From assembly GCA_900088475.1 (NCBI GenBank), contig FLMG01001771.1, positions 1 through 64,000 of the forward strand: DNA of 64,000 nucleotides. Direction: 5' to 3'. The translations under genes and the position numbers were made by a program. The notes under the pieces are model-generated. The model saw only the letters and a list, made by a program, of their open reading frames with translations. It made no database searches and was not told the origin of the DNA. Below are positions 6,257-64,000 of this stretch, one piece after another (within the stretch, counting starts at the first letter, position 1; every line of letters starts with the position of its first letter). The stretch is from Hyphochytrium catenoides. Lineage: Eukaryota > Protista > Hyphochytriomycota.

Positions 6257-8935
6257 ATGCAGGTAGCCACCAGGAGAGTGTTCCTGCTCACACAATGCCG
6301 CAGACTTCCTTTAAAGCGGATGCGGCCAGCTTGGGGGCGTGTTCCTAGTCTGTCGCAGCTTCGCTTTGCATCGAGCTCTCAAGACGAAGAACAGCCTGCT
6401 CCTCTCGCAGATCCTCGAAATTCTTCTACATCCCCCTCTCGCGCTGTTTCCGGCTCGTCTAAGCCAGCCAGTGCCCAGCAGAGTTTTCAGCAGCCAAATT
6501 CCCGGACCGTTGCGAGGGACAGTCCTAACAAGCAGGCAGTCTTCTCGTCACATACCGCACTTTCTGCTCAACTACGTCGCGGTAACGCAGACAAAGTCCT
6601 GGCTGCACTTCAGCCCTTGGAAGCCGATGGGCAAAGCCTATCGCCAGAGCTCTCAGCGCTACTTTCAGGTGCGTACGCTGCCACTGGTGAGCTGGAAAAG
6701 AGCAGACAATGGTTAGAACGATCGTTAGCATGCCCACCATCCGAGCTGGAGGATGCATTCCGACGATTGTGTGACATGCACATTGGCAAGAAGGATTTCC
6801 GCGGCTTGTACGCATTGCTGGATCGTAAGAGTGTGGCAAGCTTCATTACTGAGGAACTGCTACTCAAAGTTCTATACAATGCCGCCAAAGGAGCTCGGAC
6901 TGTAAAGGACTTCTGCTTCAATGTGGACGTGGACGCTCTTTGGCGCAAATACTCGTTTGAGCCTCATGAAAAGATGTATTTTCCTCTCTTCTACCTCTAC
7001 GTTCGTCTAGGACTGTTGGACAAAATCGTCGGGATCAAGAATAGACTGGCTCTGAAAGGCCTTTCTATGGGGACAAACTGCTGCTCCGCTATCATTATCG
7101 CCCTTTGTCAGCAAATGAAAGTTAAGGAAGCTGAGAAGTGGCTGGAATTCATGAAAAGGTCAGACATTGAGAGAGATGTGCGACTTTATGGTGCTCTTAT
7201 CAGCGCCACATCGAGAGAGAAAAATTGGAAAAGGGCTGAGTATTGGTTCGAGAAGATGAAGGAAGATGGCTTTGAAGAGAGCGCCGCCTCCCTCGGCGTT
7301 ATGGTCATCGCAGCGCGGAGGGCCAAACAGCTCACGAAGGCCGAAGAATATTTTGCCCGCATTCATGAGCTGGGTTTGAAGCCTGACAAAGAGGCGATCT
7401 CTGCTATGATTCACGCGCTTGTGGAGGCTAGACAGCTCGAGAGAGCGGTTAAACTTCTGGAGGAATCCGAGAGGGATGGGCTAGTCACCGACACTTGGCA
7501 CTATAACACGATTGTTGCGGGTTGCGCCCGATGGGGTCTGATGGGACTTGCTCAACAACTGCTGGATAGAATGAGGCAGCAGGGGTAAGGCCACTCTCCT
7601 TTTGCTATACATGCGGCAGTCTGAACCTATAGGCCAATTTGAAATAGGCCCTCCATATAGCTCGTGCTCGATCTCCCTAAGACTCTCCATTCTTCTGTTT
7701 GTCTCCTTCGTTGTTTCTTCATGGACTCGCCCATCTATCTTCATTTCTCTGCCTGCTTCTTCCTCTTTCAAAATCGCTGCCGGATTTGCCATTTGGTCCT
7801 GCCCTCTACTCCGAGAATGTGGAGGTTTCCCAGCATTCCATTCCTGTCTCTTCGTTCTTCGTGAGAGCTGACCCTTTTTCCTGCCTGCAGAGTACGCACC
7901 GATGTTTCGACCTACACTCCTGTCATCAACTACTTTGCCAAGAGAGGAAAAATGGACGGCGCTCGTCAGGTTTACGACCAAATGCTGCTCAGCGACATTA
8001 GGCCAACCATTGCAACGATGCAGATACTGCTAGATGGCTTCTCTAAGGTCCTCGACCTGGATGGCATGAACTGGGCATTCAAGGAGATGTACAGGCAAGG
8101 GCTGGAGCCGGACAAGCTCCTTTACCTCTCGCTGGTCAGCTCCTTTATCCGGGTTGGCGCTTCTGAGTCCGCTGCCGAGATCCTGCGACATATGGAAAGC
8201 AGTTCTATAGACTGGGACGCCGAAAGCATCAGCCTAGTGATGAAGACCTGCGCAAGTCATACTCCTTCAGGATCTGACGTTATAGATTACCTAGTGAGGT
8301 ACACGGAGAAGAACGGGATACCCCTTACCGAGCCTATGTATGTGGAGATTATCAGGAGCTATGTTGCCCAAAGAAGGTTGACACTGGCAAGGGAATACTT
8401 CGACCGGATGAGAGACGTCTTCCCAAAGATCCGGCTAGATGTAGTCAACGAGTTGGTAAAAGGCTATCGCCTGAAAGGGCAACTACGGGAGGCGGTGGAA
8501 CTGATTGAGCTCCTGCTAAGTCAGGACAGGAGTCCCAACGCCGCCACCTTTTCATTGTTAGCAGGACATCCTTTTTTCGAGACAGCAACCAAAAAGGCCA
8601 AGCGCAACTATCTGGTGCAAAGTGTTCTTAGCAGGATGAAAGAGCATGAAATAGAAGTGTCTCCCATCATGGCAGAGGGCATAGTGGGGTGGTTATGCGC
8701 CGGTAACCAATGCAGTTTCGCCGCCAGTGTTTTGAAGTCGCTGTGTCAGGAACAGGGGCTCAAGCCAACGGCCCGAAGCTATGAAATGGTGGCCAAATGC
8801 TATGAGGAACTAGGACGGGTTTCTATGGGGAGAAAATTCCGTGACCAGATTACGAGTATGGACGATAAGGGCTGTGTAAACGGCGAGGCGAAGGGAGAGA
8901 CGAAAGCGACTTCAGTCTCTAGTATTGACACTTAA
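6257..8935 (+). CDS. P-type pentatricopeptide repeat protein, probably mitochondrial; 2 exons (intron 7585-7890)
   Basis: Tandem 35-aa PPR motifs (YNTIVAGCARWGLMGLAQQLLDRMRQQGVRTD; YTPVINYFAKRGKMDGARQVYDQMLLSDIRPT) join in frame across the GT-AG intron. Arg-rich, acid-free N-terminus resembles a mitochondrial presequence. Confidence 0.9.
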
Positions 8936-11255: not shown

Positions 11256-13055
11256 ATGAAAGCAATGTGGTCAAGATTCACGCACACGCAGGTTCCCAAG
11301 GCTGGGAAGATGGACGTGGTCGCTGTCCAAACTACCCCACCACAAAGTTCTGTCGTAACTACCCCACCACAAAGTTCTGTCGTTATATACAGGAATAGCT
11401 TCGGATCCCTATTAGAGATGCCAGAGAAGGAGAAGAATGAGATAGAGGCCATAGAGACTGCCAAAAAGCTAGCCAGGCGCCGGGCAATTTTTACCATTGG
11501 AGTTTGTCTGATACTTGTCATTGTCATCGTGGTCATCGTTCTGCCCTTCATCGCGCTCAACAGAGTAAAAGGAGGAAAAGTTGCGTTTAGCTCTTTTGAG
11601 GTACTAAGCCAGACAGACAGAAGCCACTTCGTTATCCGAGCTACGGGAGCCTTTCGGACATCTGGACCAATCATGTTTGCAACTGGGCTTGTGTTATACG
11701 ATAACCTGGAAGTAGTGCATGAGGATGCACTTCTGGCCACTGTATCCAACATAAGCCCGCTCAAATTGCACGGGAAAGACAGTGATGGTAACTATCTCTT
11801 CAGAGACGTACAGGCTTCGGTGCTGGTAAGAAGGGAAGAGTTACGGCGCCTCCAACTATACTATCTCCCAGGTTTTAGGGGTTCAGTCAACAGGATTAAA
11901 GCTCCTTGTAAACCTTGCCTTTGGAATGCCTCTGGTCTCCATTGAATATCAATTCCTGGCCTTCTTTGCTTCTGCAATTCGCTTTGCACTTAGCCCCCGT
12001 CTTCTTGACACAGGTGGAAAGTGAGAAAGAACTTCTGAAGCTCGCCGAATCGGCCATAAACGGCACCAATGATAAGCCTCTAATAGTTCACTTTAGCGGA
12101 CAAGCAGATGTGAAAGCAATCATTAGCTTTAACGGCATTGCGGTGGACAACGAACTCCCAGTCGACAGCTCGTCTCCGGCTGTAATGGGTAAGTGCCGCT
12201 TTTCTCGTAGGTGCCGCTCCTTCTCGAGCTTTATTATGGACTGATACGCCTGCCCCTTTTCACTCCCTTTCTTCAGACCTGATGAGTAAGGTGATAACCA
12301 TGGGAAAGAGCAACCTGCCTCCTGAGTCAGGACCAACTCTACCTATAGCGGATAGCGACCATGGAGAGAGCAAAAACTCATCAGAAGTTATGGACCCTGC
12401 TGAGCTTCCTGAAGGTCGTAACTACAGTGTCTCTCTCTCTATGGCTTCATTCCCAAGTAGAGACCTAAGGATCGTCTCCGGCTGTCGTGGAGATGTGCAA
12501 AACGGTAATGGGCTGATGTATCTAGTCCTTCAAGAGAGGTGTAATGGCGCCAAAGCATCTTCTCGTGCGCGATTGAAGACGTTCTCCGCGAGTGCAAGTA
12601 TCAAGCTACCCGGAGAAGGCATGGATGCCACTGGCGTGGTAACAGCCTTCTATTCTACATCTGTCTACCCTGGGGTGAAGCCGACGGAGCCCCAAGATGA
12701 GATAGACTTCGAGTTTAGAGGATTCAACAGCTCCTCAGTCCAGACTAACTACTTTGTTAGGGGCCTCGGCAATCATGAAAGGCAGCATGATCTTGGTTTC
12801 GATGGGAGAGCAGACTTTCACACATATTCTATAGAGAATAACGGTCAGCGGATCCAGTGGTTCGTGGATGGCAAGCTTATACGCTCGGAAGAAGAGAGAC
12901 TGACTCATTCCCAGTACATTTCCTACTCGATCTGGGATGGTGGCAGTGTAAGTGCCTCCACTACGAAGTGGGCAGGAGGAAATGTAAACTATAAACAGCG
13001 GGGCGAGTTCAGCATGATACTCAGCGCTGCATCAATCGCCGGAACTACCGGCTAG
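11256..13055 (+). CDS. Type II membrane protein: TM helix + LEA_2/DUF3712-like domain + GH16 (EG16/XTH/lichenase-like) catalytic domain; 3 exons
   Basis: Basic stretch plus TM (RRRAIFTIGVCLILVIVIVVIVLPFIAL). Exons join at introns of about 11827-12013 and 12189-12277. GH16 motif QDEIDFEFRG (ExDxE at 12699-12713), VQTNYF, FHTYSIE, IQWFVDG, SIWDGG. Confidence 0.85.
11330..11383 (+). repeat. Perfect 27-bp in-frame duplication (TTPPQSSVV x2) in the GH16 protein N-terminal tail
   Basis: aactaccccaccacaaagttctgtcgt x2. Confidence 0.9.
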
Positions 13056-28800: not shown

Positions 28801-31800
28801 ACTCCTTCGGACACAGAGTAGACATTCGACCCTTCAAGGTCGCCATTTACTCTAGGGACGCAAAAGAACGTTGGGTATAGAGTAATGAGGATTATTGCAG
28901 ATATTCATAGGGACACGGCCGAGAACTTTTCAATAAAGGTTTCCCAGGCTATGACCGACAACGAGGCAGAATGGCTGAGCGGGCAAAGGTGAAGAAAGGG
29001 GGAAGGAAATGAGGAACAAGAAGACAGCAGTTAATAGCGGTACCAGCAATTGAGTCAAGAAATAAACGAGCGAAAAGTAAGGGAATAGCCGAAATCGATA
29101 GACATGACAGCTTTAAAACATACTCAGGCGCGGCACCGGAGACTGATGCCTTGCTAGCATGGCTTGAAGGCCTAGAAACAGATGTCCGGGCCCTTTGTTT
29201 GGAGTCCTCACCCTTCTCTCCTCTATCCTTCCGTGGGCTGGCTGCCTCCGAAACAGGGTAGCCTGGAAGGTTCACTAAACTCTTAGGCGTGATTCGCTGG
29301 AGAATAAATATCTTCGCTAGCTGATAGAGCACGCTGGTCCACCCTCTGCGGCTGAGCTCCAGCCATCTATGCTCCCAGTACCTCTGCTTCAGATTTCCCT
29401 TCACCAAACAAACAGGGGAAGAACCCAAAGTTTGGGAAGACCCAACTTCCCTGTCTCCGGCACATGCTGCTTCTTTCCCAGAGAGAGAGCGGGAGATCTC
29501 ATCTACGGTTGTAGTCGGAAGCTCAATGGCCAACTCTCGTCCCATGACAGATAGAAAGCCATCTCTATGCAAAAGATGCTCGGGTCTGAGGTCCGCCAGC
29601 AGTGCTCCACAGCTCTTGAGATAGGCGAGGAGCTCCTTGTACTGCCCAAGCAGCATAGAGGTATATTCTTGCTTCAACGCAGTGTTGCCGTTGTGAGCTA
29701 CAGAGTGGACGACAGTCACCTTAGAATTGAACTTCTTTCCCGTCATTGCCTCAATGGCCTCCATTACCGGCTTGCCGGAGGCGAGAATGAGGCTTTCGGG
29801 AATAGAAGAGAGGCGGTTCTTGCCAAACATATTACAGCTGAACCATTCTAAGGAGAACGCACACTCCTCACGGCATTCTGGGACAGAGTCGGCAGAGTCA
29901 GAGGGGGTAGACATGTCCGTCGACCGGGCCCTCCCACTTCCTCCTTCCCCTTTGGCCTTTATGGACTTCTTCTCTGAAAGGATAACAGGAAATCCTTCCC
30001 CTGCGGAAGTGAGATCGTAGTTTCCCCTCTGTGCTAAGAGAAAGGGAAATATTGAGAGGATCGAGTTGTCACTCATCCCGTGGACCGGGAGACTGAAAAT
30101 GTTCCCGTCATTGTCGAAGAACTCAATCTTGGCGCTAAAACTACGGTAACGGCAGAAGGAAAGGGAGATGGAGAGATGGTTAAGACCTAGGCTTGCTGTA
30201 AGGGAAGTCCGTATATATTATAGAGGACAGAGGAGAGCAAGAACACTGCTAGCAAAGAAGCTAGAGGCGGAGGGAACGGGTTCTCAACCCCCAACTTGGT
30301 GGGTTGCTTTGTCAAAGTCAGGCACATTGACACTTTACTTTTTAAGCAATTGAAGTCTTCCGTTTTACCTTAGCGGCTTCTTGGTCACAAAAGAAACCTC
30401 CACAGTCACAGCAGGGTTACCTAATCCCATAGTCTTCCCATGCGGAAACGAAAGACTGAGAGGCGCGTGTGCCGAGTCCAGCGGTAACTTGTATTGCAGT
30501 TCTAGAGAGTCGTAGCCCATGTTAAATATCTGAAATTGATAGCTGCTACGCAGAGAGAGAGGGACGATGGGAAGAACAATTTCTGGGCAGGAAAAGGCCA
30601 TGCGAGGCCACGTTCCTCTGCCCTGCAGCTCTATCTCCTGATACTTTTTCCTGGTCGGGGGGGCTGATGGGTTCTCTGTGAACGTAGAGGAACTTATTGT
30701 GTTAGAGTCGCTGATGCTAGCAGTCGATAAACACTAAACAGAAAGGGAGAGCTTTCACGGGACGGCATAGTTGGCACATCTCTAGGAAGGTACTTTAACT
30801 TCTAAATATAAAGAAACTTCCAGAGAGCTGAAGGGTTAACAGTCACAGAGCTCTAAGAGTAGTCAAGGAACAATCACATAGACCTGGCTTATCGAAGAAA
30901 GGGGCTTGATTGTCAGTAAGTCCAAAGAGAAGGATACAATATTGATCAATCAGCCAAGAAGCGACGCAGGAAGTGGCTTACCTCTTTCCGTTATGAAGAC
31001 TACAAGACGAGTATTATGCACCTTAGGAGCGGTCGGTTGATAGGTGACACGCACTGCTGCTCTCCCACCCACCTCCAACAGCCCGGAAAGAGGTGAGAGG
31101 AGGAAGGGAGAAGGAGAGGCGCTCTTTCTACCAGTAAAGAAGAAAACGTCAGTGACTAGGATACATAGATAAGCGACTCCATATCCCAGACCAAAGAGCG
31201 GCTAGAGACGCTACAACCTTCAATGGAAAAATTTGCGGAGTACTACATCTCTTTTCTCAACTGTGTGTCTCGCCCACTTACCCTCCTTTCCATTCTACCC
31301 CCGCTAGCTCCATCTCCCAAGAGAGCGGTCCTTGATCCTCATTGGTTAGTATCAGCTCTTGAGTCTTCGTCGCCTTTCTTCCGGCTTCCTTTGAAAGTAC
31401 GACTTCCCCAAAGTCCACAGAGGGCTTGGAAATAACGAGACGAGGACGCACTACATGGCCCCTAACGGGGGTCCGCAAGTGCGGGAGAGAGGTAGAGACT
31501 AGAGAGAGAGTGAGAGGAAGCGAGTAGGTGAAACTGCCAATCCCCGTTGGCCGTATGGAGAGGTAAAAGGAAAGCTCTGAGTGTGGCTGAATCTCAATGC
31601 TCCAGACTCTTCCTTCTTCCAGAAGGGAGTTTGGCTCCAGCTCCGCCTTTCCTTGCCCATAATCCTCCCTGTCCTCCACTGCAATTCTTGTGAGAGAGGG
31701 CATCATCCTCAGAGGCTCCATCGAATTGGACGCAGTGGCGAACTCTCCCATTGCACCTTCAACAATGGACGCAGATTCATCCATGGGTAGTAGAGGCAGT

Positions 31801-34800: not shown

Positions 34801-37800
34801 CTGACTGTCGACGTGGATAAGACAACACGCCCATAGTTAGTGAAGATGTACTCGAAAGAAAGAGATACGGCAAGTAGTTATCGATACAGCGATAGAGCAG
34901 CACCAACGTACTCTCTTTCGTCACAAACTTCAGCTTCGGCTCAAAATCCTCCGGCAGCGCCTCCGTACCCCCCGGGTATTGTCTCGTAGGGCCCACAGAC
35001 GTACAAGAACCCTGTAGACGTAGTGCCAAAGTCTGGACACCCTTGTTGATTGCCACTTGAAGAGTGCTCTATTGCGTGGAACGGGTAATCGGTGGGAAAT
35101 GTGGGTCAATGCTGAGAAAGAGAGAGGCCATAGAAGGAAGCGAAGAGGAGGGATGGAAGGGGGTGGGAGGGCAAGGAGTAATGGCACCTTAAAGTTACCC
35201 AATTGATTAGGGAGGAAGCTTACGACTGCCTTTTGCGTCTGCAGGGGCTGCAGAACACCCTTGGTAGGATTGACCGAGAAGTGAGGAAGCTGCAAAAAAG
35301 AGAGAAAGCAGGACTAATCAGCAGTTTCCTATTTCATACTCTGACCACAGCGGCTACCCCTCCCAATTGAGTATTCCTTACCCTCCACATTGGGCTGCCA
35401 CCTAGCTCTAAGTTTGTGCTATGCTAGCTGGTGCTAGTGGCGCATTGTCTGATCACCCCTCGAAGACCTGCCACTCTCAGCTATAAGAACCTCTCTCGCT
35501 GGCTCTATTTCTAATAGTGTCAAACCTTGTTAATTGAAAAGTCCACCGGGAGCTCTCCGCTGTTTTTGATGGCCACAAGAACATCTCTGCGATCCCCTGA
35601 CGGACATTCTCCAAAATTGATGTCTGGCTGGTCTAGAGAGACTTGTAGCGGCGTGGCCTATGAAGAGTAGGTGGCATAAAGGAAAGGAAGAGGATATTAG
35701 GAGAGATGTGACGCATAGTTATAATGAGCGTCGAAAGAAAGGAAGTGGATATTAGAAGTGGCCATAGGACTGAGCTGTCGCGCAGTGGAGAACGGGCCAA
35801 AACGAAAAAGATACTAGCTGTGAGATGACATTAGCCATGGCTATAGGCGACAGTGAGAGGCCCATCATTCCCATGAGACTTGACGAAAACGAACAACCAA
35901 GATGAGACAGGAATGATGTGCAAAGAGACCCCATACATAGGTCTAATCATCTCGTCCCTCGCACCTTTCCCGACATTTTGACAGAAATTTCTGTCTTCAG
36001 CTCCGGACTCGTGATGACGGCGAGCTCCTCTAAAGCCTTTGACTCTAAAGTACTCGAAAGCTGCGATTTGAAGCCCTTTCCTGGTTGTGGAACTTGCGGA
36101 GAGAAGCTGAAGGAAAGCGGGACGCGAGAGTAGGGAGCCATGACTCCCTCCCAGGGTATGACTGACATTGCCTTCAATCCATTGCTGACAAAGACAATGG
36201 AAGAAGTACGAAAGTCAGGAGATCGACAAAGATCACGTGAGCTGGGACAGCAGGCAAGCGGCGTGGATGGCCCGTAGAGACAACCTCACGGACGGCTATG
36301 GCACTGTAGATCGTGATAAAATACAGTGACGAGCTTACCTGCCCCCTGAGACGCTCTTGGACGAAGTGTCCTCTTCTGATGCTGATTCTCCTACAGCTAC
36401 TTGAAATGTGATTTTCTTGGGTCCATTATTAATCAGATAGGCGGTTACATTGCGTTTCTCTCCGTAATGAAGGATACCAAAGGGAATTTTGTTCAAGGGT
36501 GTCCCGGAATCTAAACAGCGCACATCTATGTTAGGCTGCATGCATCGTATGATCGTGAGAGTGAAGAGAGCGAAATGGAGCAGAGAGGCCTGCGAAATGT
36601 GAAGGACAGGGGAGTTTGGAACGAAGGACAGTCAAGAACCAGCAGTCACCTGGCAGTTGAAGATCAAGCTTTTGCTCAACAACTGTGGCACTGATGTCTA
36701 ACACTCTCTCCACACTGCCAGCAATGCGCACTGTAGCCAGTGTCCTGAAGTCTCCCGAGCTTTCTGGGCTTAGTTCTACCTTCACAGTAAGCTTGTTGTG
36801 GGGAGCGGCCGTAGTTGGAGGAATGACGCCTAAAGATTGAGGTAAGCTTCTTTGTATCGCATCCAACCTCCTGACCCTCATCCTTCCCTCAGCAGTTCCA
36901 TCCAGTTTCTCTCTCTTTCTCTCCCTTCCGCTCTCTGTCTTTCCCTCCATTCCATCTCCACCACTTCTCTTCCTTTTCTCTCTGTCCCTCTCCCTTTGCA
37001 CCTTCTTGTACGAGTTCCATTTCATGGTCCATCTAGGTTCTACACACATGGAACCTCATCTGATGATGGACATTCATCTAACAGCCGTCAATTCCATATC
37101 TCTCACAACTCTCGGTTAGGCCGTTCTTTCTACTCCCATCACATTGTCATCCACCCCTTACGCAACCTGTGCACTCCCACTGGCCGTGTTGCTCACCTTC
37201 TCGAGGTGTGATCTTCAGTGGCAACTTGTCATCGTACGCGATTGAGAACTCCGCATCTCTGTGACCCGTGTTGACGAGCTCAATGCACTGCGCTGCCGGA
37301 TTGTGCATTGTCACTACTCCCAAGTTCACGAAGCCATTGAAGGTAATGTTGCCGCGAGGAGGTTTGGCTGTGAGTGGAATCTCTACCATGCCAGCCTCAC
37401 AATGTACCTTCACGCTGTCGTAGATGTCGGATGGAGTCTCAGGATTTTGACTGTTAGAGGTCTTGGGTGCAGGGAGAGTGAAGTGCACCTCTGCCTTGGC
37501 CGACATTCCTGGCGCGATTCCACCTGAAGGCTTGTACTCCAGCCGAAAGTACTTGGTGGTGGGTGCCGAGAAGCGGACCCTAAGCAACTTGCTTGAGTGA
37601 TTCTGGATCTCCAGAATCGTTACATAGAGAATGCCGGGCTCACAGCCTTCGAGATCAATCCGTGGAGGGTACACTCTCAGCTTGCCTCGCACTTCTCCGA
37701 CGGCTGTAGATGTGGACAGTTCGCTTTCGTTATTGGTTGAGGCGCCACGTCCTTGGGAGAGCTTTTTAGGGCTTTCATGAAGCTTTCCATCGCTTGAGCG

Positions 37801-37848
37801 CTTCGGAGCAACAGCTCCATCTCTCACCTCTCCAGGCATGGTGGGCAT
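22816..37848 (-). CDS. CFAP47: Cilia- and flagella-associated protein 47 (many ASH/PapD-like Ig domains plus a calponin-homology domain); more than 30 exons, not all boundaries verified
   Basis: Many ASH-like exons (LRVYPP..GIAPGMSAKAEVHF; LTNSGNAPCDFRW; VDFGEI); CH-like segment YSVSEGVLLRWLSFHVN..IVNFDHALHDGVAL (about 28670-28830); GEFLYEL and GEFWY motifs; C-terminus TEDMQWVYELVGRHPRYVPP, stop at 22816. Confidence 0.9.
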
Positions 37849-47419: not shown

Positions 47420-50400
47420 TTAATTTACCTTCCTTACGCTCACAGGGCATGAGGAATAGATCAGCATCTCCAGTTCGCCCTCCTCCGGGTTAAATGTAGA
47501 GGGCAGCAAGCAATAGAGTCCGGGCTCTAGACTTACAGTCGGCGTCACGACCCCCGACACAGTATTGACGTACACACCTTGATTTGATGTGCAGCCAGCG
47601 TATGCAGCGTTCGGGTTAGTGCTTGGGCTCAAGGAGCACCCCGCAGAGGTCTGATATAGGGAGATATTCATGGCTGGGTAAGGTTTCCCCGATAGCCAGC
47701 GCAGGCGGACGAAAAGAGCGCACCTAGAACAACGGGAGACAACAGACAAAAACAAGAAAGGGATTCAAGGGTGAGTCAGGGCCACCAGGTCGAAAGGATC
47801 AATAGATGAAAGGGAGAACTGCTAAGCCAGAGGAAGACAAGTACTTCAGGAAGTCCATGGATTAGGCGAGCAGCCATAAGGAGAGTCAGCAGGGTGAACG
47901 CCAGCGTGCCAGCAGGCCGTGGAGAAAGCAGGGTTGTGGCACTCACTTGCTGATCACTTCTAACAAATACTTAGGGTTCCTTCTATATTTGCCGTGGTTG
48001 TTGCAGCCCGCAGCTGTCCCTTCCGCGTGGCTCCAAGCTCCCTTCACAGTCTGCTCTATCATCCCCTCGCCTTCAGGAGGGACAGGGCGTAGCTGATGGG
48101 GCTTAGAAGTGCAAACAGTGAGCTTGAAGTCGCCACAGCTACCTGCTCACGAACCGAATGGTGCAAAATGAAGGACGGAAACGCCAGAAAGCAGTATAAG
48201 GCCAAGGGTTAGAATAGGATCAGGGGTGCAAGGCTTAAGGATAGAAGAAATAAACCGGGTAGAGCCGCTGAAAAAGCTATAACAGCACCACAGAAGGCGC
48301 GGAGAATGGACATATAGCCATGAAATGGGTGAGGAAAACCTCTTTGAGTTTGCCTTTACTTGCAGAACAGTACCTTTCTCAAAAGTAGAAGGGATGATGC
48401 AATACACTCCCGGGGCCAGGGTATCCTTCTCTAAGTAGCAGAAGCCACTGCGATAGTCCCCCGAAGATGTCTCCTCACCGCTCAGGGCAACTGAGGCGAC
48501 CCTTCCACTGCTGCGCACCACCCGGACGTTGATCGGAAATTGAAGAGGGCCGTCTAAGAACACGAGGAGGGCCGTTTCTTGCTCCAGTGTAAGGAGCCAC
48601 TGGGGATTGTGGAGGAAGCTAGGAAAACGGGGGTTGCCACCTACGCCAGAGGTCGGAATAACGAAGTAAAGAAAGCAAGGAAAAGAGCCCAAGAAAGAGG
48701 TATCAGCCATACGTTAGAGAATTGTCCCCGCATAACGGTCACCTAGATGTAGCATAACTAAAGAGGGACTCTGTTACAAATATGGGCAGACCTAGCCAAC
48801 TCTCCACAACAGTAACATAGAAGCGAGTAACATGTTCCTCAATGTGTTCGCCACGCACCAGCTGTCTTTTGGTCCCATGCCCCGCCGAGTGATGTCTTAA
48901 AGGGCAATCCTTCCTCTGTCTCTTTCATGGTAAACGGGCATGTGGAGAATATGTCAAGAGTGTAGTCTATTGGCCTGAGTTTCTCATACTGGGAAACCAC
49001 CAACGAGTAACACGACACGCCAGGTGGGGGATCTATGCGCATCAAGACGTGTGGGTTGTTGCTATAGACGCCACGAAGTAGAGCATCCTGAGGATAGATG
49101 ACTCGCTTTCCTTCCCTCCCTACACAGCGATATAATGAGTTAAGGAAGAGAGCCTGGGAGTCAGAAAAACCGACACCAAGAGGAGGCGTAGGAATGAGCA
49201 TATCCACGAAGAGGAAAAACAAACTCCTCCTACGGCTGAGCTAGAGGTTAGCATAAAACAGAATCCTAGGTGCGGGCTAGGAAGAAGGCACCACAGTGAG
49301 ATTGGCAGCAGCAGGAAAGCAAGCCACATCCGTAAGAAAGTAAGGTGCAGAACGCATCAACTCCTTGGGGCGAATAGGGCTAGTCGTGATGTTACCTTTG
49401 TAGACGTGAAGCGTTAAAAAGTCTTGTTCTACCACTTGCTCCTTACTGCACGTATGTCGGGTCAGTAGTGCCCACACTGAACCCCCGACTTCTGCTGCAT
49501 CTCCCTTCTCCTCTGGTTTTACAGCGCTGTTCTTCTTTATCTCCTCAGCGTTAACAGTTAGAGTGTATTGAGGATTGTACGCGACAGTGTAGGCGTCGTT
49601 TTCCGGTCCAATAGTCACTGGCCAATGCCTGTGTATTACTGTGCGAAAGGGAAAGAGCTCTGGATTCCAGTTCATGAAAAGCCCACGGAAGTACCGCTTA
49701 ACCGACTCAAAGTCAATCCAGAAGATGCCATTGTCATCTGTGAGGGCTAATTGCTGCGGAAGAAGCGTGAAGAGAGATTAGTGAGCGGTGCATGTCTGCC
49801 ATCGTAGACAATTCAGCAGGTGCATCGAGGGATTCTTCAGTATCAGCGAATGAACCTAACAGTGTCCACTACAGTACACAGCATTGACCGCTACATTGAG
49901 AACTGTTGACAATTTGCTTACCGGATCATACTGAAGTTCCTGCAAGAGCTTTGGCGTCCAATTAGAGTAATCCGAAGCTGAGTATGGGCCTCGCCACCGG
50001 ACCCGGCTCCAAGGATTCTTTACCTGTCCAAGCATCGAGCACTTTAGTCGGACCTACCAGACGGGACAAGCGAGTACTAGCACAGACGCACTCCAATTGG
50101 CTCTAATCACGACCAGCCCACAGTCATGCAAGGACGAGAGGCATGCGGTGCCCACCTGTAGTAGGCGCACGCCACAAGCTTCTCTAACATCCAGCACCGC
50201 GTAAGCGTGCGACTCCACAAGACCTAGCCTATGTGCCTAGAACAAAGCGGAATATAGCGGTGTAGAGAGAAAAGACTAGTTTAGTCAACTGCATGACGGA
50301 GGTAAGGCAACGCCCGGACAATTGACAGGCTCCACTGCGGAAATCGAAGCGACTTGATAGGAAGATGGAAAGTGAGATATCTACGACAGTCCAGTGAGAT

Positions 50401-53111
50401 TACCCGTACAATTATACTCGCCCCAAGACACCAGTGACAAAGTAGTGACTGAGCTTACCTCTTCTCTCTCCATTTCACCCGTGGATATTGTGATCAAACA
50501 ATCCCCGTACTTTGAAGCGGAGACCAGCCGTGCCCAAGTTCTCTCGTATTCCTTCTCCTCCGTACTCCCCGGCTCAAACTGCAGAGACTCTGGAATCCAG
50601 CCAGTCAAAGAGAACAGATCGATACCAGAATTGCTGCCTGGAAAGTCATAGCCGCCATGAACCTTCATGTATGCCTTTTCAATTATGGACACCTGACGAG
50701 GTCGCGTTAGTTCAAGAACCAAGTAAGACACAGAAGCAACGTGCCACACTGGCCAACCTGGCAGGAAAGCTGTATCTGACAGTGGGATCACAAGCATTGG
50801 TGCAAAAATAAATTGACGAAAAGTTACTGCAGACATGAGGCATGTCTTGGTTCAGACTAGACGAATCGAGATGGGGAGCTTACCCAGAGTTCTCCTGAGA
50901 CTGCTGAGTAGGAGCAAAGCAGCTTCAGGTCCTTGTCTACAGGTAAGAGGTCATCTACAATGACCTTCCTTGCTATCCCATTGATCCAAAGCTTCACCAT
51001 GTACTTGCCACTCCTGACCATAAGGAGAAAAGCAGTCGTATTGTATGAACAAATGCAGTTTTGAAGAACAAGGTAACCAAAAGAGTCGAGGATTGACGGT
51101 TGGTAGCTGAAGAGAGAATTGACTCCATCCCAGGAACAAGACGACGCGACAACGCTGCAAGAAGACAGGAAGGATGGATACAATTTGTGAGACTGCTTTT
51201 TGAGCTTCTTACGGATTGTAGAGTGGCTCCCCTTGGGCATTCTGGGGATAAATTATGTTCGTGATCAGTCGCTTCTTCCATTTCTGCTCATATGCGGCCG
51301 TAATGCAGAGGGATGCTACGAACGAGCAGTCCGTCACCAAATCCTATATCCGAAGGAGGTTGGAAGGGTCAACTTAGAGCTAAGAGGATAGAAGGGAATG
51401 CAGTAAGATCACGCTTGGGAAAGGTAGCCACCTAGGAAGGACCGTATGATGGAAACCGGAGGTGAGCTCTTTGTACCTGCGTGATTGAAAGGGCGGACAC
51501 TTGCTTGATCATGCTAGGTGTCCCGTGATAAAACTGCGACGGGCGCATCCAACTGAAGAACCTTTTCTGCTGCTTAGAGGACAGAGGTAGTACAGTGTCG
51601 TCCGTGTACGGCCGTGAGAAATTGAACACCTGCTCAATTTTGAAGAGGGCACACATTCAGGGATCCCAGCTAACAAGGGTCGTCAAAGGGTACGACGAGA
51701 TGCAATACAATGAGTCACGCGGCCATGGCGTTAAGGCAAACTTTGAATGAGAAAGTACTCTCACGTGCATAAGAAAACACCAGATAACAAATGGACAAGG
51801 AGTGACGGAAAGGAGAGATATAATGAGGAGCGGTAATTAAAGGGCAATGACCTCGCTAGTCTCATCCGAGTCAAGCCAGGGCAAAAATATGCGACCGTTG
51901 ATGGTAGAAGATCGCCGCAGGACGTCCAGCTCAGAATCCGAATACCTTTCCACCTTCTTTTCTGTGGATAAAGTTCTAGCTGATAGTCCTGCTGCTGGTA
52001 TCACTGCACGGCTTGAATTAGGCGATGGGGCTGGTGCGGTCCTCAGGCTATTGATATGCTCAATACGGTCCAAGATGGTAACCACCTTCTCGGAAAGGGC
52101 CTTCTTTTCACTTTCATGCATGTCCCTCATGCAGGATATGAACCTAGCCGGAACGGGCCATAGGTAGATCACCACGGGTGAGAAGCCGGGATAGATTACT
52201 TAGATAGAATCAAAAGTAAGAAAGACCAGAGAGAAAGGTCGAGCTCGGAGAGTTCTGGGAAAGACGGGTTCAGACGCGATTCTGAACAAGCGAGAAGATG
52301 CCAGCAGGAAGCCAAGACATGCCAACCTGAAGTCTCATTCTCCTTTACCTTTCAGCTGCGGCTGCATACGAAGCTTTTGAGTCTGCCCATCGGCCGTGGC
52401 TCTCGTCATCCTGTGCTTGCCTCAGCAGCTGTTCTGCCTCCTCCAGAGGCGTGAGGGGATACCTGGGCTGAGAAAGACTAGGAGCTTGGTCATCCAATCT
52501 CCCACCTTTGGTAGAAGGCGCTCGAGGAGGAAGACCAGGAGATGAGGAAGATATATCCAAGCCACAGAGCTCCAGGTCAGAACTGTCAGAGCCATCGCCG
52601 TCGAAGATATCGGTTAAGGAGAAATTCTTCCTGAGAACTATTGGCATGCATGAGCCTCGATGTAAACGAGTATCAAGAGAGGAAGAACCGTTTTTGTTTA
52701 TTATTGGAACCGCGGGCACTTTGTAAAGACGGGAGAGGGAATAAGCGTGTTCAAGTGGCCGAGAAGCCGACTGGAGACAATATGCAGACCTGAAGGGCAG
52801 CAGACAAAAGAATCTGAAGTGCACGCTTATGACGTACCATTTGCCATCTGAACATTTCCGGGCCGATCAACCATCGCCTGCAATGCACCCATCCTCTGCC
52901 GGTATTCTTGTGCTCTGGCAAGTATTAGGGCTCGATCCCCTTCGTTCTTCACCAGTTGCGACGCAATGGCCTGCTCAAGCTTGGAGGCCGCGGCCCCATA
53001 CAGGCTTATTGCTTCTCCAAAGTGCTGCTGGCAATCAGCTTCAACAGCCTTTTGGGCTAGCTGAAGCCCCTCGTGGGCAAGCGTGGGTCTAGGGGATGCT
53101 GGGGCATCCAT
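47420..53111 (-). CDS. CAPN7: Calpain-7/PalB cysteine protease (2 MIT + CysPc + calpain-III domains); multi-exon
   Basis: [23 protein letters not shown]; catalytic triad intact in [25 protein letters not shown] and VKNPW; [32 protein letters not shown]. Confidence 0.95.
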
Positions 53112-56868: not shown

Positions 56869-59800
56869 GGCTCTCTTCTTCTATGCTCAAAGGTTCTTCC
56901 TCCTCGGACTCAGCGGCTGGCTGCTGTAACTCCTTGTATCCGCTGGAGAGAGCCGCTTTAGTGCACGTTGGCCTTAGGCTTTCTTGAGCGAAAATGCCAC
57001 TAAATCTCCGTTAAAATGTGCTGTGAATGTGATGATGTAGAGAAGACCTGTGACCTATGACCCATGAACTTTAATATTTGTAGAGACTGATTATCGGCAA
57101 AAAGCGAGCTCAATGAGTTTTGGCTTGAGGCTTGAGATCGGCTGACATCCTGAGAAGCCGGTACCGGCTAGTCATGTTTCCTTGTCGCTCTGTTTCTTTT
57201 GAAGTCACTCTTTTCTCCATACAAAGATACAGAAGAAGTTCTACTCCTTGGGCGGTACTGATGATGTGTGAGAGGAGGGAAGAGAGTGGGAACAGTTAAT
57301 CCAGACTCCTCCTTTTGTCTCTATGTTTCCGCTTTTCTGGGTCAGTTATTAGTTTGCTTCTCTATTCTACTATAGTAGTGATGTATGCAAAAAAAAAAAG
57401 AAGAAAGGAGTACTACTGCTCCTCATCATCATCAAAAAGAAGAGAAACAAGGAGATGTGAAAGGAAAAGAAGGAATAGAGGAGAGGAAGAAGAAGGATGA
57501 GGCAAGGGCTACAAGGCCTTGACCTCTTCATCTCTCTTCTCTTATCTTCATTTTCATCATCAGAAGGGAAGAAGAAGAAGTATCATACTCGTTAATTTCT
57601 TCTTCACCAGCAATAATAATAGGAGAAATGGGACAAGGAGGAAAGTCCAAGACCATCATCATTCGCCACCACCAGCGAAGCAAGAGAAGGATCCAACTGC
57701 TGAGACAGAATACGTTCGAACGCTGAAGGGCATTTCGTCATGGAAGGCCCAGGAGAATCGGGTATGTAACAGCCGTAATAAGCCCATCGTGAGTCCTGGA
57801 GACCAGTAGTAGTAGCGTCCATAAAGAAAGCGTCAAGCAAGGAGCGATCACATTGAAGCTTCATAAGCCGCTGCACACAGGCTAGGACACGAGGCATAGC
57901 TGCCCCCAAGGATTCTCCAACTAGGGAACAAACTGCAGCCGTACAGCCTTACAGCGAGCCTCATCGTACCCTTCTTCTTCAACTTGATAACCTCAGAAAA
58001 ACAACCCTGATGATAGCCTCTAATTGATGAAGAGTAAGAACAGGTTTGAATTTTAATGCGGCCTTTTATCTATCATTATTCAGAGGTTGGGAAGGGAAAC
58101 ATGCAACATGCAACAGACTTAGCTAGGACGACAGAGGACACAGACTCTAAAGCTCTAGTAATAGCACGAAGCTCACCCTTTTTTATACCACCACGGTACT
58201 ACGAGTGTCGGCAGATGTAGACAGAAGGAGTACTAAACAAGGGAAGAGAAAGAGACTATTATTGTTCCTAGGCGCAGGAACGAGGAGGGGTAATGGCTGA
58301 GACAAGCACTTCATAATAAACGGTGGCCAGAAGAAGAAGAGAAGAAGACAGCGCAGCCAAGAATCGGGAAGACGACGAAGTCGCCACCAGACGAGGAGCC
58401 TTAGGAGAAGGGAGAACAGTAATAAGCAGATGATACGAAGAAGAGCAACTGGCCTATGATGAAGTAACGTACCGTTCAAAAGATAGCCAAACTACTACTC
58501 GCAAAGTGCCAGGGAAGAAAACAAGGCCGGATATAACAGTAGTAGAAGATGCAGAGCTCTCGATCACACTCCACTTCGCTGACACTTTTTTGGCAATGGC
58601 AACCACCTCTCCTAATAATCTAGTTATGAGAGACTGATAGGAGGCTTTGACTTGTTTACATCTGTAGCAGCAGAGTAACTTCTTACTTCAGGAGGTAGTA
58701 GTTCTAGTACTGAAAAGAAGCTGGCCTACTCTGGTGGTAGAACTACTCCACCACTTCTCCGCAGTACAGTTTTACACTTTTACTATTTTATTCACATTCC
58801 CTAAAATAAGTAATAACGGATTCTGCTATTTACGGCAATGGATGTGCTTGCTGTACGTCCTCTTGTCGGTTCATGGTGAACTGGATGAGAGAGCATCATC
58901 TGCTTCAATGCTTCTTCTGTCCTGTCTCTTTGGGACTTCTGAGCCCCCTCCTTGCCCGCTGCGTTGTTTCCCAGCCATCACGGATACACAGCGAAGAGTG
59001 AAGAAGACGAAAGCCACCACGACAACCATCATAATATCTGGGATGGTACGAGAAGCCTTAGACGGTCAGACAACATCCGAACCAGGTCATAGGCACTCTT
59101 CGAGGACGATGAGGGTGACATATTATTAATGGTAACTACGTAGATTCCTCTTCGGGGCGTCGTCGTAAGGCATTATTATGTTGATCTGGATGTCTCTTCT
59201 TGTCGTCATCGAGACCACCTAGACTGTCGCCTTCTTCGGTCGGTCCGGACATTGCTTGTGCTTCAGGGTGCGAGAGCAGCTCGTCTTCATGCCCAAAAGC
59301 TTCCTCCTGATCCATCATCATCAAAAAAGAAGCCTCGCCTTCAACGAGCAGTCAATAGGCCGGCAGCCATCATCATCGATCGTCGGTCTGCTACATTTGC
59401 TGGAAGAGAAGGAGAGCCAGAATAACTGCCTACTGCTGGGTTGGTAGTTCTCTTTGTGCTTACTTGCTTAGTTCCATCCCAGGGATCTCCATCATCGGGG
59501 ACAGGGCTCGGCATTGCTTGCTGGGCTTACATAACAAGGGCCAGTTTTCCTCAGCACTGCGGTTCTTCTGCAGCAGCAGCAGCAGTAGTAGTACACACAA
59601 CGCTTGGTTGGCATGGCCCAGAAGAAGAACAGCAAGAAACGCTCGAGGATCCACCACCTCTTCCCTTTCATCACCATCCAGCGACATGATGTCTGCCAAC
59701 TGTCGGGTCCATCCTCTTGCAAGCGAAACGATGGCGCTGATGGCTACAACGGAAGGAGGTGAACCAACAGGAGAAGCCTAAGCAAAGACTATTTGCTAAG

Positions 59801-59924
59801 GTCATGCGAGAGAAAATTCTGCTTCTTCTCGTTCCCCTTTGTTATGGCATAAGCACTACTGCAGCTAGGGAGTCCAATAACGTCAGTAGCCAGCGAGCCA
59901 AACAAGAGTGAGTAGGAGACCAGT

Positions 59925-60013
59925 TCCTGCTCGGTTTGTCTGAACTCTTCGTGAGTTTCCGCAGTTTATCCTGCTCGGTTTGTCCGAACTCTTCGTGAGT
60001 TTCCGCAGGTTAT
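59925..60013. repeat. 44-bp tandem duplication with nested inverted repeats
   Basis: cctgctcggtttgtc[t/c]gaactcttcgtgagtttccgcag[t/g]ttat x2, followed by a T run. Confidence 0.9.
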
Positions 60014-61240
60014 TTTTTTGCACTTGTCCAAAGAAGCGGCTTCTACTGAAAGCGAGTTGGAGCGAGCTCTCTCAGCTGAAAGATCTTATCACCGGCCGGT
60101 AAACTTTTCTTACTTTCCTCCTCGCTAGGAACACTATAGGCTACGGGCGGGGGAGCACGAGGCGGTGTCCTCTTCACCTTTGACTGTTGTTGGGGATACC
60201 TAATGCCCGCCTGCTGGGGCCCCAGGGGTGTCCAGATGATCCTGCGTCAATGAGAGATTTTCAAGGTATCAAGGGTGCTCCTTAGGTCATTTGTGCGCTG
60301 AATCAAGCTCGAAAACGGAACCTGTGAACGAAGCATGAGAAGCTCTTCATTAGTTTCCTCCTAATTGTATCTTTGTTGAGATGCCTGTGATCCTCCTCCT
60401 CTTCTCAGCTCTTCCTGTGTCTCTTTCTATATGAAGATCCTTCCCTGCTTTTGTTTCCAACCAATGGACGTACGTCTCTTTCTCCGTCTTTTTATTGCTC
60501 TCTCTGCTACACAGAGAGGATGACTTCACTACTGCCACTACCGTTGTTCAAAATACCGGAGGAATAGACACCACCGCCTCTCTCTTGTAGCAGGGCTTTG
60601 CGGTTAGAAGTGGTGAAGGAAAACGATAGAGTAAAGGGGCAGATCTAAGAGAAGAGGCGAACGCTGAGGAGAAAAGAATGAAATCAAGAGAGGGAGACTA
60701 CTAGGACAGGAGATAACAGCGAGGGAAAGCACAGGAAGAGACAAGAAGAGACACAGAAGAGAGAGAGAGAGAGAAATGGTGGCGAGGGGATAATGCGTGA
60801 AAAAACCAGGTAGACTTTTGAGGGACAGCCTTTCTTGGAGGGACGCTAGGAGGAGAAGACTCACCCGAAGGTGATCCACTACGCGGGGTTTAGTTCCCTC
60901 ATTCCTTCTCTTCTTCTGTAAGGGACTGAGCGCTGATGCCACTGAACATCGTAAAGAACAAGGGGTGACTCTAAACATTTGTGAATTTCCTATGAAGAAC
61001 CTCGTCCGTCCTTTGAGAGGACGGCAGTGTTCAATAGACTGAAGAGATCGGCAGCGACTCCGTCACTTGTTGTTAGTGGCAGCTTGCTACTACATCGTGG
61101 TCTGGTGATTTGATAGGGAGAAGAGAGCCCTTCTGTGCTCAACGGCGCCACTACTGTTTTGTCACACTTGCCTTTCTGCCCACTTTGAGAAAAGACAGCT
61201 TTACTTATTTGGCAAAGTGGGAAGCTCCTCCTACTAGAGG

Positions 61241-64000
61241 ATGAATTCATTCTTCTCGTCTCCACCTGCTACCGCATCATCACCGGCGGCCACGACGGCA
61301 GCAGGGCTCTCTCCCCTGTCAGTAGAAGGCCGTATAACAAAGGAACCTCCTCCACCATCCTCTTGTTCTGGTGGGAGGAGGGGAGAGCCAGAAATGGAGC
61401 GGATTGCTGCAGATCTTGCCCCCAAGCTTCTCGACAGCACAGCTGGAGAGACCGAGCAAAGAATAATGGAGGTAATTAGGGTGGTCCCTCGGCCGCCAAG
61501 CGTCATGTCCGTCGTTTCTCCGGTTTGCAAAGAAGAACAACATCCAACTGAAGAACAACCACAGCAGCAGCAGACGGGGAAGAATGAACACTTTCTCCCT
61601 TTGTCAGTTCTTCCTACACCCCGTCGTTTCCCTCCTCCTGATCCTTTCAATCCTCTTCTTGCTGGTCTTCTTCCTGTACAGCACCAGACGCCGACAGGGC
61701 ATCAGCAGCCATCAACGAGGGGCCAGTCATCACCAAAGCATACCTCTGGAAGCTTGAGGAGTAGTGGGTCACTAGGGAAGAGAAAAGAAGCTACATCTTC
61801 GTCCTTCCCACAGGACAACAACCGAACGGAAGCAAAACGTCCGATGACCCGGCAACAACAGAATGGATCATCGCAGAAGGAGGACCTGTGCTTCACAACT
61901 CGGCTTCAACTGCGCACGATAGCAAATAGGGCTCGCAAACTGGTTGAAGAGGCACCTAGTCACTGCCTGACCGAAGAACAACTTAGGCAACGCCTGCAAC
62001 GCAGCTTCGGTGCCAAACTTTATAATCTCTACAGAGAGTTAGACTATCCGGGGCTGCTGCAAGCCTACTACTTAAAGATTGCAAATGGAAAGGAGGGGTT
62101 TGAAGAAAAAATGGTTTGGCTGTTGGACTCCGACTGGACCAGCAGTTCCGCACTCTATCCCTCCGCTTCCTCCCCCATGATCCTCTCTTCCATTCCTAAA
62201 GAAAGACCCTCTCCTCCTTTCCCTACTACGGAGGCACCATCTCCTTTGCCTCTCATACAGTCGCTGCCCCTTCGCCCAGCAGCAGCTCCTGGAAATGCGC
62301 ATTCCTCCTCCTTTTACCCTGGATGGGGTCAGCAACCGGCGTGGGACGCCATCCCGTGGATGAAAAGAGAGTCAGACACGCAAGGGGACGGCTTCCATCC
62401 AAGGCTGGAGGAAGAAAGCGGTGGCAGGATGGAGAGTGCCTTGGGGAGAAGGAAAAGACAGAACCAAAGGAGCCTGTGTGCCTTGAAGGTGGGATCGGTG
62501 ACTGACGATAGGTTGGACGCCGAAGTGCCAGTATTCTATGTCTCAGCGTCCACATCCCAAAAACTTCTTATGTTGATAGAGGAAGAGCTCTCGCGATGCT
62601 CTGAGCTCTCACTATGCTTCCAAAAACCAAAGCTCGGGGAACTCAGGACGAGAGACAAAGAGCCCGCTACTGTCTGTTGTTATCTCCTCACCATTCTCTC
62701 TGTGTCGGCTGCTATATCTACTGCCCCATCACCGCCGGTACATAATTATGCCTCATCTTCTTCCTTTGCTTCTTCCAGCACGGCGCTAGGTGGAGGGCGA
62801 GAAGAAGAGAAGGGTGGCCAAGAAAAGAAGGTCTTCCTTTTCGAATTGGCACCTAAAAATGGCTCTTCCTACTACCCTTCGTCGCCCATAAGTGACCTGG
62901 TTCGCCGTGTTATTGCGCGCCCTGGGGTCACAAAAGCCGTCTGGACAGACGAGGACGCTCACCTTCCTTCGGGCCCCTGGCAATTCTTCTTAGGGGCCAA
63001 CCCGATGGGAGTCTTTGACATTTATGAGGTGTCCAAGCAGCTCTCTGCTTTCTTGTCCTGGAGCTGTTTACCCGGAGGAGCAGGCAAGAGAACTGAGGAG
63101 GAAGATCGTTGTCCATCAAATACGGTCGGTGATCTTAGTCTGAACAAGCTGTTGAAGCTCTTCAATCTGCCTGTAAACAACCTTAAGGAGATTATGGCCA
63201 AGGAGATGACGGCCATCCTACAGAACGAAAGCGGAGAGAAGAATAGACGCAGAAAATGGACATTCATGCTGAGAAGTCAGCCCATGATCCACTGCGCGAC
63301 ATACGATGTACTGCATCTTTTGGAGCTGAAGAAGAAGCTGGAGGAGAAATGGAAAGAAGCCTGCCGATCGCGCTTTTCCTGCTCCTCTTCTCATCAGCCA
63401 TCGGTTCCCCCTTTTGCTCTTCCTCGTCCTCTTCAAAGTGGGAGTCCTCCGGATCCATCCAAAACAGGAGAGTGTTTCACCAGTCAAGAGATGAGGGACC
63501 GCTTCCTTCCCTTTGGCGTTCCACTCTCTCTTTGTTTTCATTGCGACGTAGATCCTCCGTCCGGGTCGGTACTGTTCCTTCCACTCTATAGCCTGCTGAA
63601 GTCTTCTACTGCTTCTGGCACCTCCTCCAGCAGTAGTGTGAAGGCAGACAAGAATGAGCTTAGGAAAGAGAAGATGGAAGAAGACAAGGATCAACGACAG
63701 GCTAGCGAGAAGACACTGCTTAGAAAGATAATGAGCAAGAGTGCTTTTGGGACAAGAAGAGAAGCACAACTAGAAGCCAAGAAGAAGGTAAGAGACCTCC
63801 CACCACCACTCCTTGCCGGACAGCCGCAGCCACGGCAGTCCATTAGTGCCTCAGACACAGTAGAGGAAGAGAAGAGACGCCACGGCATTAGGAGGCCAAA
63901 CGCAGGCACTGAGGAAGGAAGACCAGCACACCGCAGAGGTGCTGAAGAGGGAAATGGAAGAGGAAGAGAATCCGAGAAGAAAGAGCAGGAAGGAGGCGAG
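61241..64000 (+). CDS. Large ORF (at least 920 aa, 3'-partial): low-complexity N-terminus, LOTUS/winged-helix-like segment, inactive EXD1/Egalitarian-like DEDDy 3'-5' exonuclease domain
   Basis: ATG at 61241 after an in-frame TAG (61235-61237); no stop to the window end, hence omitted by the ORF track. Exonuclease-fold motifs at about 62525-63350: VFYV..LSLCFQK, KVFLFEL, VIARPGVTKAVW, GVFDIY, SLNKLLKLFNLPVNNLK, W..RSQPMIHCATYDVLHLLELKKKL. Confidence 0.75.
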   Translation, partial: MNSFFSSPPATASSPAATTAAGLSPLSVEGRITKEPPPPSSCSGGRRGEPEMERIAADLAPKLLDSTAGETEQRIMEVIRVVPRPPSVMSVVSPVCKEEQHPTEEQPQQQQTGKNEHFLPLSVLPTPRRFPPPDPFNPLLAGLLPVQHQTPTGHQQPSTRGQSSPKHTSGSLRSSGSLGKRKEATSSSFPQDNNRTEAKRPMTRQQQNGSSQKEDLCFTTRLQLRTIANRARKLVEEAPSHCLTEEQLRQRLQRSFGAKLYNLYRELDYPGLLQAYYLKIANGKEGFEEKMVWLLDSDWTSSSALYPSASSPMILSSIPKERPSPPFPTTEAPSPLPLIQSLPLRPAAAPGNAHSSSFYPGWGQQPAWDAIPWMKRESDTQGDGFHPRLEEESGGRMESALGRRKRQNQRSLCALKVGSVTDDRLDAEVPVFYVSASTSQKLLMLIEEELSRCSELSLCFQKPKLGELRTRDKEPATVCCYLLTILSVSAAISTAPSPPVHNYASSSSFASSSTALGGGREEEKGGQEKKVFLFELAPKNGSSYYPSSPISDLVRRVIARPGVTKAVWTDEDAHLPSGPWQFFLGANPMGVFDIYEVSKQLSAFLSWSCLPGGAGKRTEEEDRCPSNTVGDLSLNKLLKLFNLPVNNLKEIMAKEMTAILQNESGEKNRRRKWTFMLRSQPMIHCATYDVLHLLELKKKLEEKWKEACRSRFSCSSSHQPSVPPFALPRPLQSGSPPDPSKTGECFTSQEMRDRFLPFGVPLSLCFHCDVDPPSGSVLFLPLYSLLKSSTASGTSSSSSVKADKNELRKEKMEEDKDQRQASEKTLLRKIMSKSAFGTRREAQLEAKKKVRDLPPPLLAGQPQPRQSISASDTVEEEKRRHGIRRPNAGTEEGRPAHRRGAEEGNGRGRESEKKEQEGGE

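Follow-up and report, generated by a model that had tools for sequence, protein, structure and literature searches.

A long uninterrupted reading frame of Hyphochytrium catenoides encoding a probable degenerate DEDDy-type exonuclease-like domain and a candidate winged helix

Organization of the open reading frame

The DNA described here is a 64,000-nucleotide stretch of the protist Hyphochytrium catenoides (assembly GCA_900088475.1, contig FLMG01001771.1, positions 1 to 64,000), referred to throughout as the window. At its right end is a rightwards-reading open reading frame (ORF) that runs from position 61241 to the last base of the window at 64000, a stop-free span of 920 codons. It opens with the first in-frame ATG, at 61241, which is preceded by an in-frame stop at 61235–61237, and the stop-free run of 2763 nt is the longest when all six frames of the window are compared (the runner-up is 1341 nt). 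From the base composition, 920 stop-free codons are expected by chance with a probability of ~1.5e-20. A first-pass annotation of the same letters had described a 2760-nt stop-free frame running off the window and missing from the ORF track, and both observations hold; the frame is missing for the trivial reason that the ORF listing omits frames that leave the window, and in the 61241–64000 region it contains only short ORFs.

By composition, approximately half of the ORF is low-complexity, and the remainder includes two candidate domains separated by a linker. The predicted features, all on the rightwards strand, are as follows.

61241..64000, +, one uninterrupted frame, at least 920 codons long (starts at ATG 61241, stop-free, covered by contigs of three public runs)
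61241..61873, +, N-terminal region, residues 1–211, rich in S/P/T/Q/A (S+P+G+T+A 48%) and probably disordered (from composition; no family match)
61904..62137, +, small helical domain, residues 222–299, a candidate LOTUS/OST-HTH-like winged helix (from ESM Atlas neighbours, sub-threshold)
62138..62512, +, low-complexity linker, residues 300–424 (from composition)
62513..63361, +, putative degenerate DEDDy-type 3′-5′ exonuclease-like domain, residues 425–707 (from Atlas, profile, PDB and hhalign comparisons)
62603..62632, +, candidate Exo I-equivalent strand ELSLCFQKPK, with Cys and Gln at the expected Asp and Glu (in hhalign the Cys faces the ALDTEF Asp; weak, P 0.21)
62708..62824, +, S/A/G/E-rich insert, residues 490–528, between predicted strands 2 and 3 (in frame; the contigs show no joint)
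62888..62965, +, predicted helix, strand and Exo II-equivalent (ISDLVRRVIARPGVTKAVWTDEDAHL) with acidic residues kept (aligns with RNase D ITDWSPLKAILRDPSITKFLHAGSEDLE)
63245..63361, +, predicted Exo III-equivalent helix (W...IHCATYDVLHLLELKKKLEEK), with Tyr replaced by Cys and Asp kept (from RNase D profile, decoys and PDB matches)
63467..63601, +, hydrophobic segment, residues 743–787, following the exonuclease-like domain (faint echo of the helical-domain core)
63602..64000, +, K/E/R-rich tail leaving the window (from translation and composition)

The first-pass annotation had named a LOTUS stretch and a series of exonuclease motifs, and each quoted motif is found where it was placed: ELSLCFQ at residues 455–461 (62603–62623), KKVFLFEL at 529–536, KAVWTDEDAHL at 565–575, GVFD at 590–593, SLNKLL at 632–637 and W...HCATYDVLHLL at 673–694.

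The reading frame in independent DNA

Three public DNA runs, all from one study, yield contigs that cover the ORF and provide independent DNA. These contigs differ from the window at ~0.8% of positions across the ORF, and at least three haplotypes or strains of the organism are present among the runs. The well-covered contigs contain no frame-breaking change in the ORF, and their sole indels are two in-frame insertions (AGT after 61320, GGA after 63073); the one contig that has 1-nt deletions, two of them, is of depth 3. In the non-coding region upstream of the ATG (59686–61148) the public contigs have indels of 4, 2, 4 and 1 nt. The contrast between in-frame indels in the ORF and out-of-frame indels upstream gives a Fisher P of 0.07–0.1 on small numbers, and the pattern fits a maintained reading frame. 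Beyond 64000 the public contigs stop within ~150 nt, and a metagenome scan for the continuation with an exact 39-mer from the window end returned nothing.

The segment 61241–64000 is a real coding frame, a single exon of an intron-free gene piece whose 3′ end lies beyond the window. The neighbouring genes seem to be split into exons, with the calpain-like and CFAP47-like genes on the minus strand appearing as strings of short stop-free pieces, so that a single 2.76-kb exon is unusual here, in line with the first-pass description of an uninterrupted frame beside intron-rich neighbours.

Relationship to DEDDy exonucleases

Four types of comparison, each of them weak, agree in linking the second candidate domain to the DEDDy 3′-5′ exonucleases. 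Of the 30 ESM Atlas clusters nearest to residues 425–745, 28 carry PF01612, with a score of 0.93 and 173 shared features; according to the tool description this number is one that true family members typically show, although 4–10% of shuffled proteins reach 0.9 and the calibration covers whole proteins, not parts. A profile constructed from Escherichia coli RNase D and 120 family members, run unfiltered on the single ORF, has one match in the 920 residues, at residues 683–707 (IHCATYDVLHLLELKKKLEEKWKEA), which align with the family Exo III helix (E 0.004). This score is reached by 1 of 2000 shuffles and by 4 of 2000 window shuffles, and hmmalign to the same profile aligned Exo III only.

Searches of the PDB with phmmer point to the same helix. 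Residues 425–745 have a single match among 177,635 sequences, the ancestral diDNase 9qrf_A, and residues 631–720 have just two, 9qrf_A and the NanoRNase C 7mpr_A (E 0.5–0.8), at the homologous Exo III position. Both are RNase D-type DEDDy enzymes (PMC13464484, PMC8492067, PMC6330322). Alignment with the RNase D family by hhalign is colinear over 191 columns (P 0.025), and removal of two low-complexity inserts gives 159 columns (P 0.0056), with 2 of 300 decoys reaching the real score. The aligned blocks are the N-terminal helix plus ELSLC-F (against AIALDTEF), ISDL..VRRVIARPGVTKAVW (against ITDWSPLKAILRDPSITKFLH), PMGVFD (against PQPLID) and Exo III, all four in the family order. The profile, PDB and hhalign evidence leans mostly on the same Exo III helix.

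The profile controls and PDB matches show the predicted Exo III helix to be related to those of DEDDy 3′-5′ exonucleases of the RNase D/NrnC/WRN class. It is quite probable that 62513–63361 as a whole descended from a DEDDy exonuclease domain (PF01612, RNase D/WRN/NrnC class), and we infer that residues 425–707 keep the whole exonuclease fold, interrupted by the two low-complexity inserts.

Predicted loss of the catalytic site

The defining residue of the DEDDy class is the Exo III Tyr. In the ORF it is replaced by Cys (HCATYD), with the Asp kept, in all three alignments (the RNase D profile and the two PDB searches), as the first-pass annotation had read it. The Exo I position reads C-F-Q in the better hhalign register and S..A in the other, neither of which is acidic and both of which are on weak alignment; the earlier reading of the Exo I DxE as C-F-Q thus coincides with the better register of an alignment that is not significant (P 0.21). 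For Exo II, which had been called altered (KAVWTDED), a D-E-D cluster is retained at residues 570–572 in an ambiguous register; one alignment pairs its Asp with the family Asp and two miss it, so that the call stands in part. Reading of the translation reveals no Asp-x-Glu behind a hydrophobic strand at the expected position. Both acidic residues of Exo I, Asp and Glu, appear to have been lost (C..Q), and the exonuclease-like domain is probably catalytically inactive.

A nuclease that is active with a non-canonical site, formed by D-E-D at residues 570–572, D-K-E at 471–473 and the kept Exo III Asp, seems very improbable. Acidic residues are indeed present at Exo II and Exo III and the alignment of Exo I is uncertain, but the Tyr that defines the class is Cys in every alignment, Asp-x-Glu is missing from its place after the hydrophobic strand, and EXD1, the known precedent for losses of this kind, is inactive (PMC4712191).

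The candidate LOTUS-like helical domain

In the ESM Atlas, residues 205–300 lie closest to unnamed clusters (0.87), with OST-HTH the best named neighbour (0.84) and WHD_Egal at 0.81. TTC3, MCM3 and eIF2D winged helices come next; the named neighbours are thus all winged-helix families, and all are below the 0.9 level. A Pfam scan of the helical domain at E 10 has no match to OST-HTH (PF12872), and there are no LOTUS structures among its PDB sequence matches. That residues 222–299 form a LOTUS-like winged helix is a tentative assignment, one that we doubt somewhat more than we credit.

The hydrophobic segment beyond the exonuclease-like domain contains a stretch (63467–63526, GECFTSQEMRDRFLPFGVPL) that faintly resembles SHCLTEEQLRQRLQRSFGAKL of the helical domain (residues 743–762 against 240–260; domain E 0.52, not significant). 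It could be a remnant second copy of the helical module, or a chance resemblance.

Weighing of the evidence

The reading that we prefer, and consider about evenly poised between right and wrong, is that the ORF is the start of a real intron-free gene (920 codons) for a lineage-restricted, fast-evolving multidomain protein with a disabled, DEDDy-derived binding module. The protein appears as a fast-changing orphan, restricted to its lineage and from a poorly sampled protist.

Several results weigh against this reading. Searches of Pfam with the whole ORF and with pieces (including residues 425–745) reveal no family even at E 10, NCBIfam and PHROGs searches with the ORF are blank or give noise, and word-index homology searches with residues 200–760 and with the exonuclease piece (E 10) find nothing. 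An exhaustive HMMER search with residues 205–760 against 1.84 billion representative proteins has zero matches, and because these do not include the protein's own sequence, the gene is absent from the public protein sets searched. No RNA runs for the organism were found among the public runs. Within the exonuclease-like domain, the N-terminal half (Exo I and Exo II) alone does not align significantly with the family (P 0.21), and PDB phmmer searches with two N-terminal sub-pieces give noise or no match. Single-sequence AlphaFold2 prediction of the exonuclease piece yields no usable fold model, with a predicted local distance difference test score (pLDDT) of 37 and a predicted template modelling score (pTM) of 0.22; it was run without relatives, an input alignment of distant PF01612 proteins having been rejected as circular. 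The model of residues 212–305 is of low confidence (pLDDT 63), with four helices, no strands and no wing, and Foldseek against the PDB, an ESM Atlas shape search and VIA-align find helical-bundle noise only, results treated as uninformative and not as refuting in view of the poor model.

The differences among haplotypes belong with these points. Counts rest on 31 listed base differences in the ORF, with 15 further differences outside the list. Among those listed, 8 are synonymous and 23 non-synonymous (the neutral synonymous share is expected to be 0.24), an omega of 0.3 or less is rejected (P 0.004), and amino-acid changes are densest in the helical domain (5 in 85 codons).

Two further searches with the ORF gave no relatives: a metagenome scan with protein patterns had nothing matching, and PDB phmmer with the whole ORF returned antibody noise only.

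The lack of family matches and of a usable model (pLDDT 37), together with the low-complexity half of the ORF, would suit a mostly disordered orphan protein that has no exonuclease fold, in which the match of one amphipathic helix (A-x-x-D-V-L-x-L-L...) is due to chance or convergence and the language-model neighbours mislead. The significant sequence signal is limited to ~25–70 residues, the N-terminal half stays at P 0.21, and shuffled proteins attain an Atlas score of 0.9 in 4–10% of cases. We regard this explanation as improbable: four methods agree on the family and three on the site, the four hhalign blocks follow the family order over 159–191 columns, 173 Atlas features are shared, and the sole PDB matches of queries bearing Exo III, from 177,635 sequences, are DEDDy enzymes.

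The main rival to the preferred reading is a relaxed or decaying young duplicate, dispensable and drifting near neutrality, which has lost its active site in this way and has no function of its own. The listed differences (8 synonymous and 23 non-synonymous) fit an omega of ~1, and the predicted domains are no better conserved than the linkers; moreover, catalytic positions are replaced and no relative is detectable. Weighed against this, 920 stop-free codons are far beyond chance, and a neutral frame would not have survived divergence so deep that similarity can no longer be detected. In the deep contigs the two indels of the ORF preserve the frame, unlike those upstream (Fisher P 0.07–0.1), the 31 listed differences introduce no stop codon, and a high omega fits diversifying selection too. 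We consider the duplicate unlikely, if less so than the other alternatives. The near-neutral haplotype differences and the in-frame indels together indicate that the protein is weakly constrained or diversifying, with its frame kept.

Eight differences from one public contig (run X1) are clustered within 215 nt at the start of the helical domain (61744–61958), a density ~4x the ORF average; most of them change an amino acid. The cluster might reflect gene conversion or diversifying selection.

Neighbouring genes and the question of viral origin

Other genes predicted in the window are as follows.

6257-8935, +, pentatricopeptide-repeat protein, in two open pieces
12282-13055, +, glycoside hydrolase family 16 protein
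28949-30076, -, CFAP47-domain flagellar protein (the CFAP47-like gene spans ~27–32 kb)
37147-37848, -, PapD-like/Cep192-like piece
47420-51240, -, calpain-like gene of several exons (matches to Peptidase_C2 and Calpain_III among its pieces)

The presence of a gene for a CFAP47-domain flagellar protein indicates that the organism builds flagella. Between the calpain-like gene and the ORF are ~7 kb with few open frames. A 44-bp unit is present in two tandem copies at 59925–60013, ~1.2 kb 5′ of the ATG, and further repeats are flagged at 59500–59598 and 60744–60782. No Rfam family reaches its gathering score in the whole 64-kb window, opposite-strand and upstream ORFs match no families, and a tblastn search for the ORF elsewhere in the window reveals no paralogue.

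For both domains, most records in the closest Atlas clusters come from Nucleocytoviricota. Acquisition of the gene from a giant virus or some other mobile element would explain these neighbours as well as the orphan status and the lack of introns, a single long exon being found among split genes. We think such an origin quite improbable. The Atlas taxa rest on few members and, as the tool warns, are no sign of transfer; none of the viral contigs scanned encodes a relative; and no repeats or mobile-element ends are seen near the ORF. Composition and codon usage show no difference from those of the neighbours, although the codon test is powerless, with wrong frames correlating equally well.

Comparison with known systems

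The predicted domain shares the block order of the DEDDy domain (PF01612; RNase D, NrnC/diDNase, WRN-exo and Rrp6), and its Exo III helix (A-x-x-D-V-x-x-L-L...L) is similar to those of RNase D, NrnC and the diDNase ancestor. It differs from PF01612 members in falling below every curated threshold, in the replacement of Tyr by Cys, in the probable C..Q of Exo I and in its two low-complexity inserts. Such similarity as can be detected is to bacterial NrnC/RNase D-type proteins and giant-virus PF01612 proteins, and is too weak for subfamily assignment. Accordingly, the first-pass designation of an EXD1/Egalitarian-type exonuclease is retained here as far as DEDDy descent is concerned, on four concordant weak lines of evidence, and its EXD1/Egl label is unsupported, there being no match to an Lsm domain and no sequence match to Egl.

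EXD1 acts with TDRD12 and PIWI as partners, an animal germline system. It is an inactive DEDD nuclease that binds single-stranded RNA and consists of an N-terminal Lsm domain, a DEDD core and a C-terminal dimerisation hook (PMC4712191). The ORF resembles it in having a DEDD-type domain with catalytic residues apparently lost, and by analogy non-catalytic binding of single-stranded RNA is a likely mode here. Unlike EXD1, whose N-terminal Lsm domain binds TDRD12, the ORF has an N-terminal module predicted to be helical, and Pfam at E 10 has no Lsm/Sm family in it. Neither the exhaustive search nor the PDB searches reveal a sequence relation to EXD1, even though an EXD1 structure is in the PDB.

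Egalitarian (Egl) is a Drosophila mRNA adaptor for BicD-dynein. Structures of Egl-BicD from 2026 reveal that Egl pairs three LOTUS-like winged helices with an exonuclease-homology domain, which jointly clamp RNA without catalysis; the putative catalytic residues are kept in Egl, whose exonuclease domain is followed by a four-helix XAD, and the protein also carries a site for dynein light chain (PMC13186709). If the LOTUS lead holds, the ORF would have the same succession of winged helix, flexible linker and exonuclease-homology domain. It has one candidate domain in place of the three of Egl, with an Atlas score of 0.81 to WHD_Egal (PF23713) that is below 0.9; its catalytic residues are replaced, and it has no sequence match to Egl. 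The stretch after Exo III, at the position of the XAD, also differs, the residues after 711 being S/P-rich and coil in the very-low-confidence model. The pairing of a winged helix with an exonuclease-homology domain is a known architecture since the 2026 Egl paper, and not a new one.

The helical domain is like LOTUS/OST-HTH domains (PF12872; Oskar, TDRD5/7 and MARF1) in its length of ~80 residues and in a predicted succession of helix, short strand, helix with F-G, helix and hairpin. It is unlike them in having no Pfam match, four helices without a wing in the low-confidence model, and no structural match.

Possible function and significance

Under the preferred reading, that of a fast-evolving protein with a disabled DEDDy-derived module, the exonuclease-like domain would no longer cut and, as in EXD1, single-stranded nucleic acid might be held in the disabled pocket. 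Like the Egl domains of Egalitarian, the helical domain at residues 222–299 may add a second contact, with RNA or a helicase. Participation in nuage, RNA silencing or mRNA transport would be purely by analogy.

A more elaborate proposal is that the disabled DEDDy exonuclease and a LOTUS-like winged helix clamp RNA in the manner of Egalitarian, in one chain with a Ycf45/SpoIIIAA-type ATPase, the whole being an ATP-driven machine acting on RNA or ribonucleoproteins. We hold this to be doubtful, with little weight in its favour. No paper was found that mentions 'Ycf45' together with 'exonuclease'.

To our knowledge, the use of catalytically dead exonuclease folds to bind RNA has so far been described in animals, in EXD1 (piRNA pathway) and Egalitarian (mRNA transport). 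A like arrangement of parts in a protist protein, if true, would bear on the origin of that design, a case that is thin at present, with one orphan sequence behind it. If the clamp and ATPase reading were true, the arrangement of winged helices and exonuclease-homology domain in Egl would be older than animals, and the fast-evolving copies would suggest an arms race, for example with transposons or viruses.

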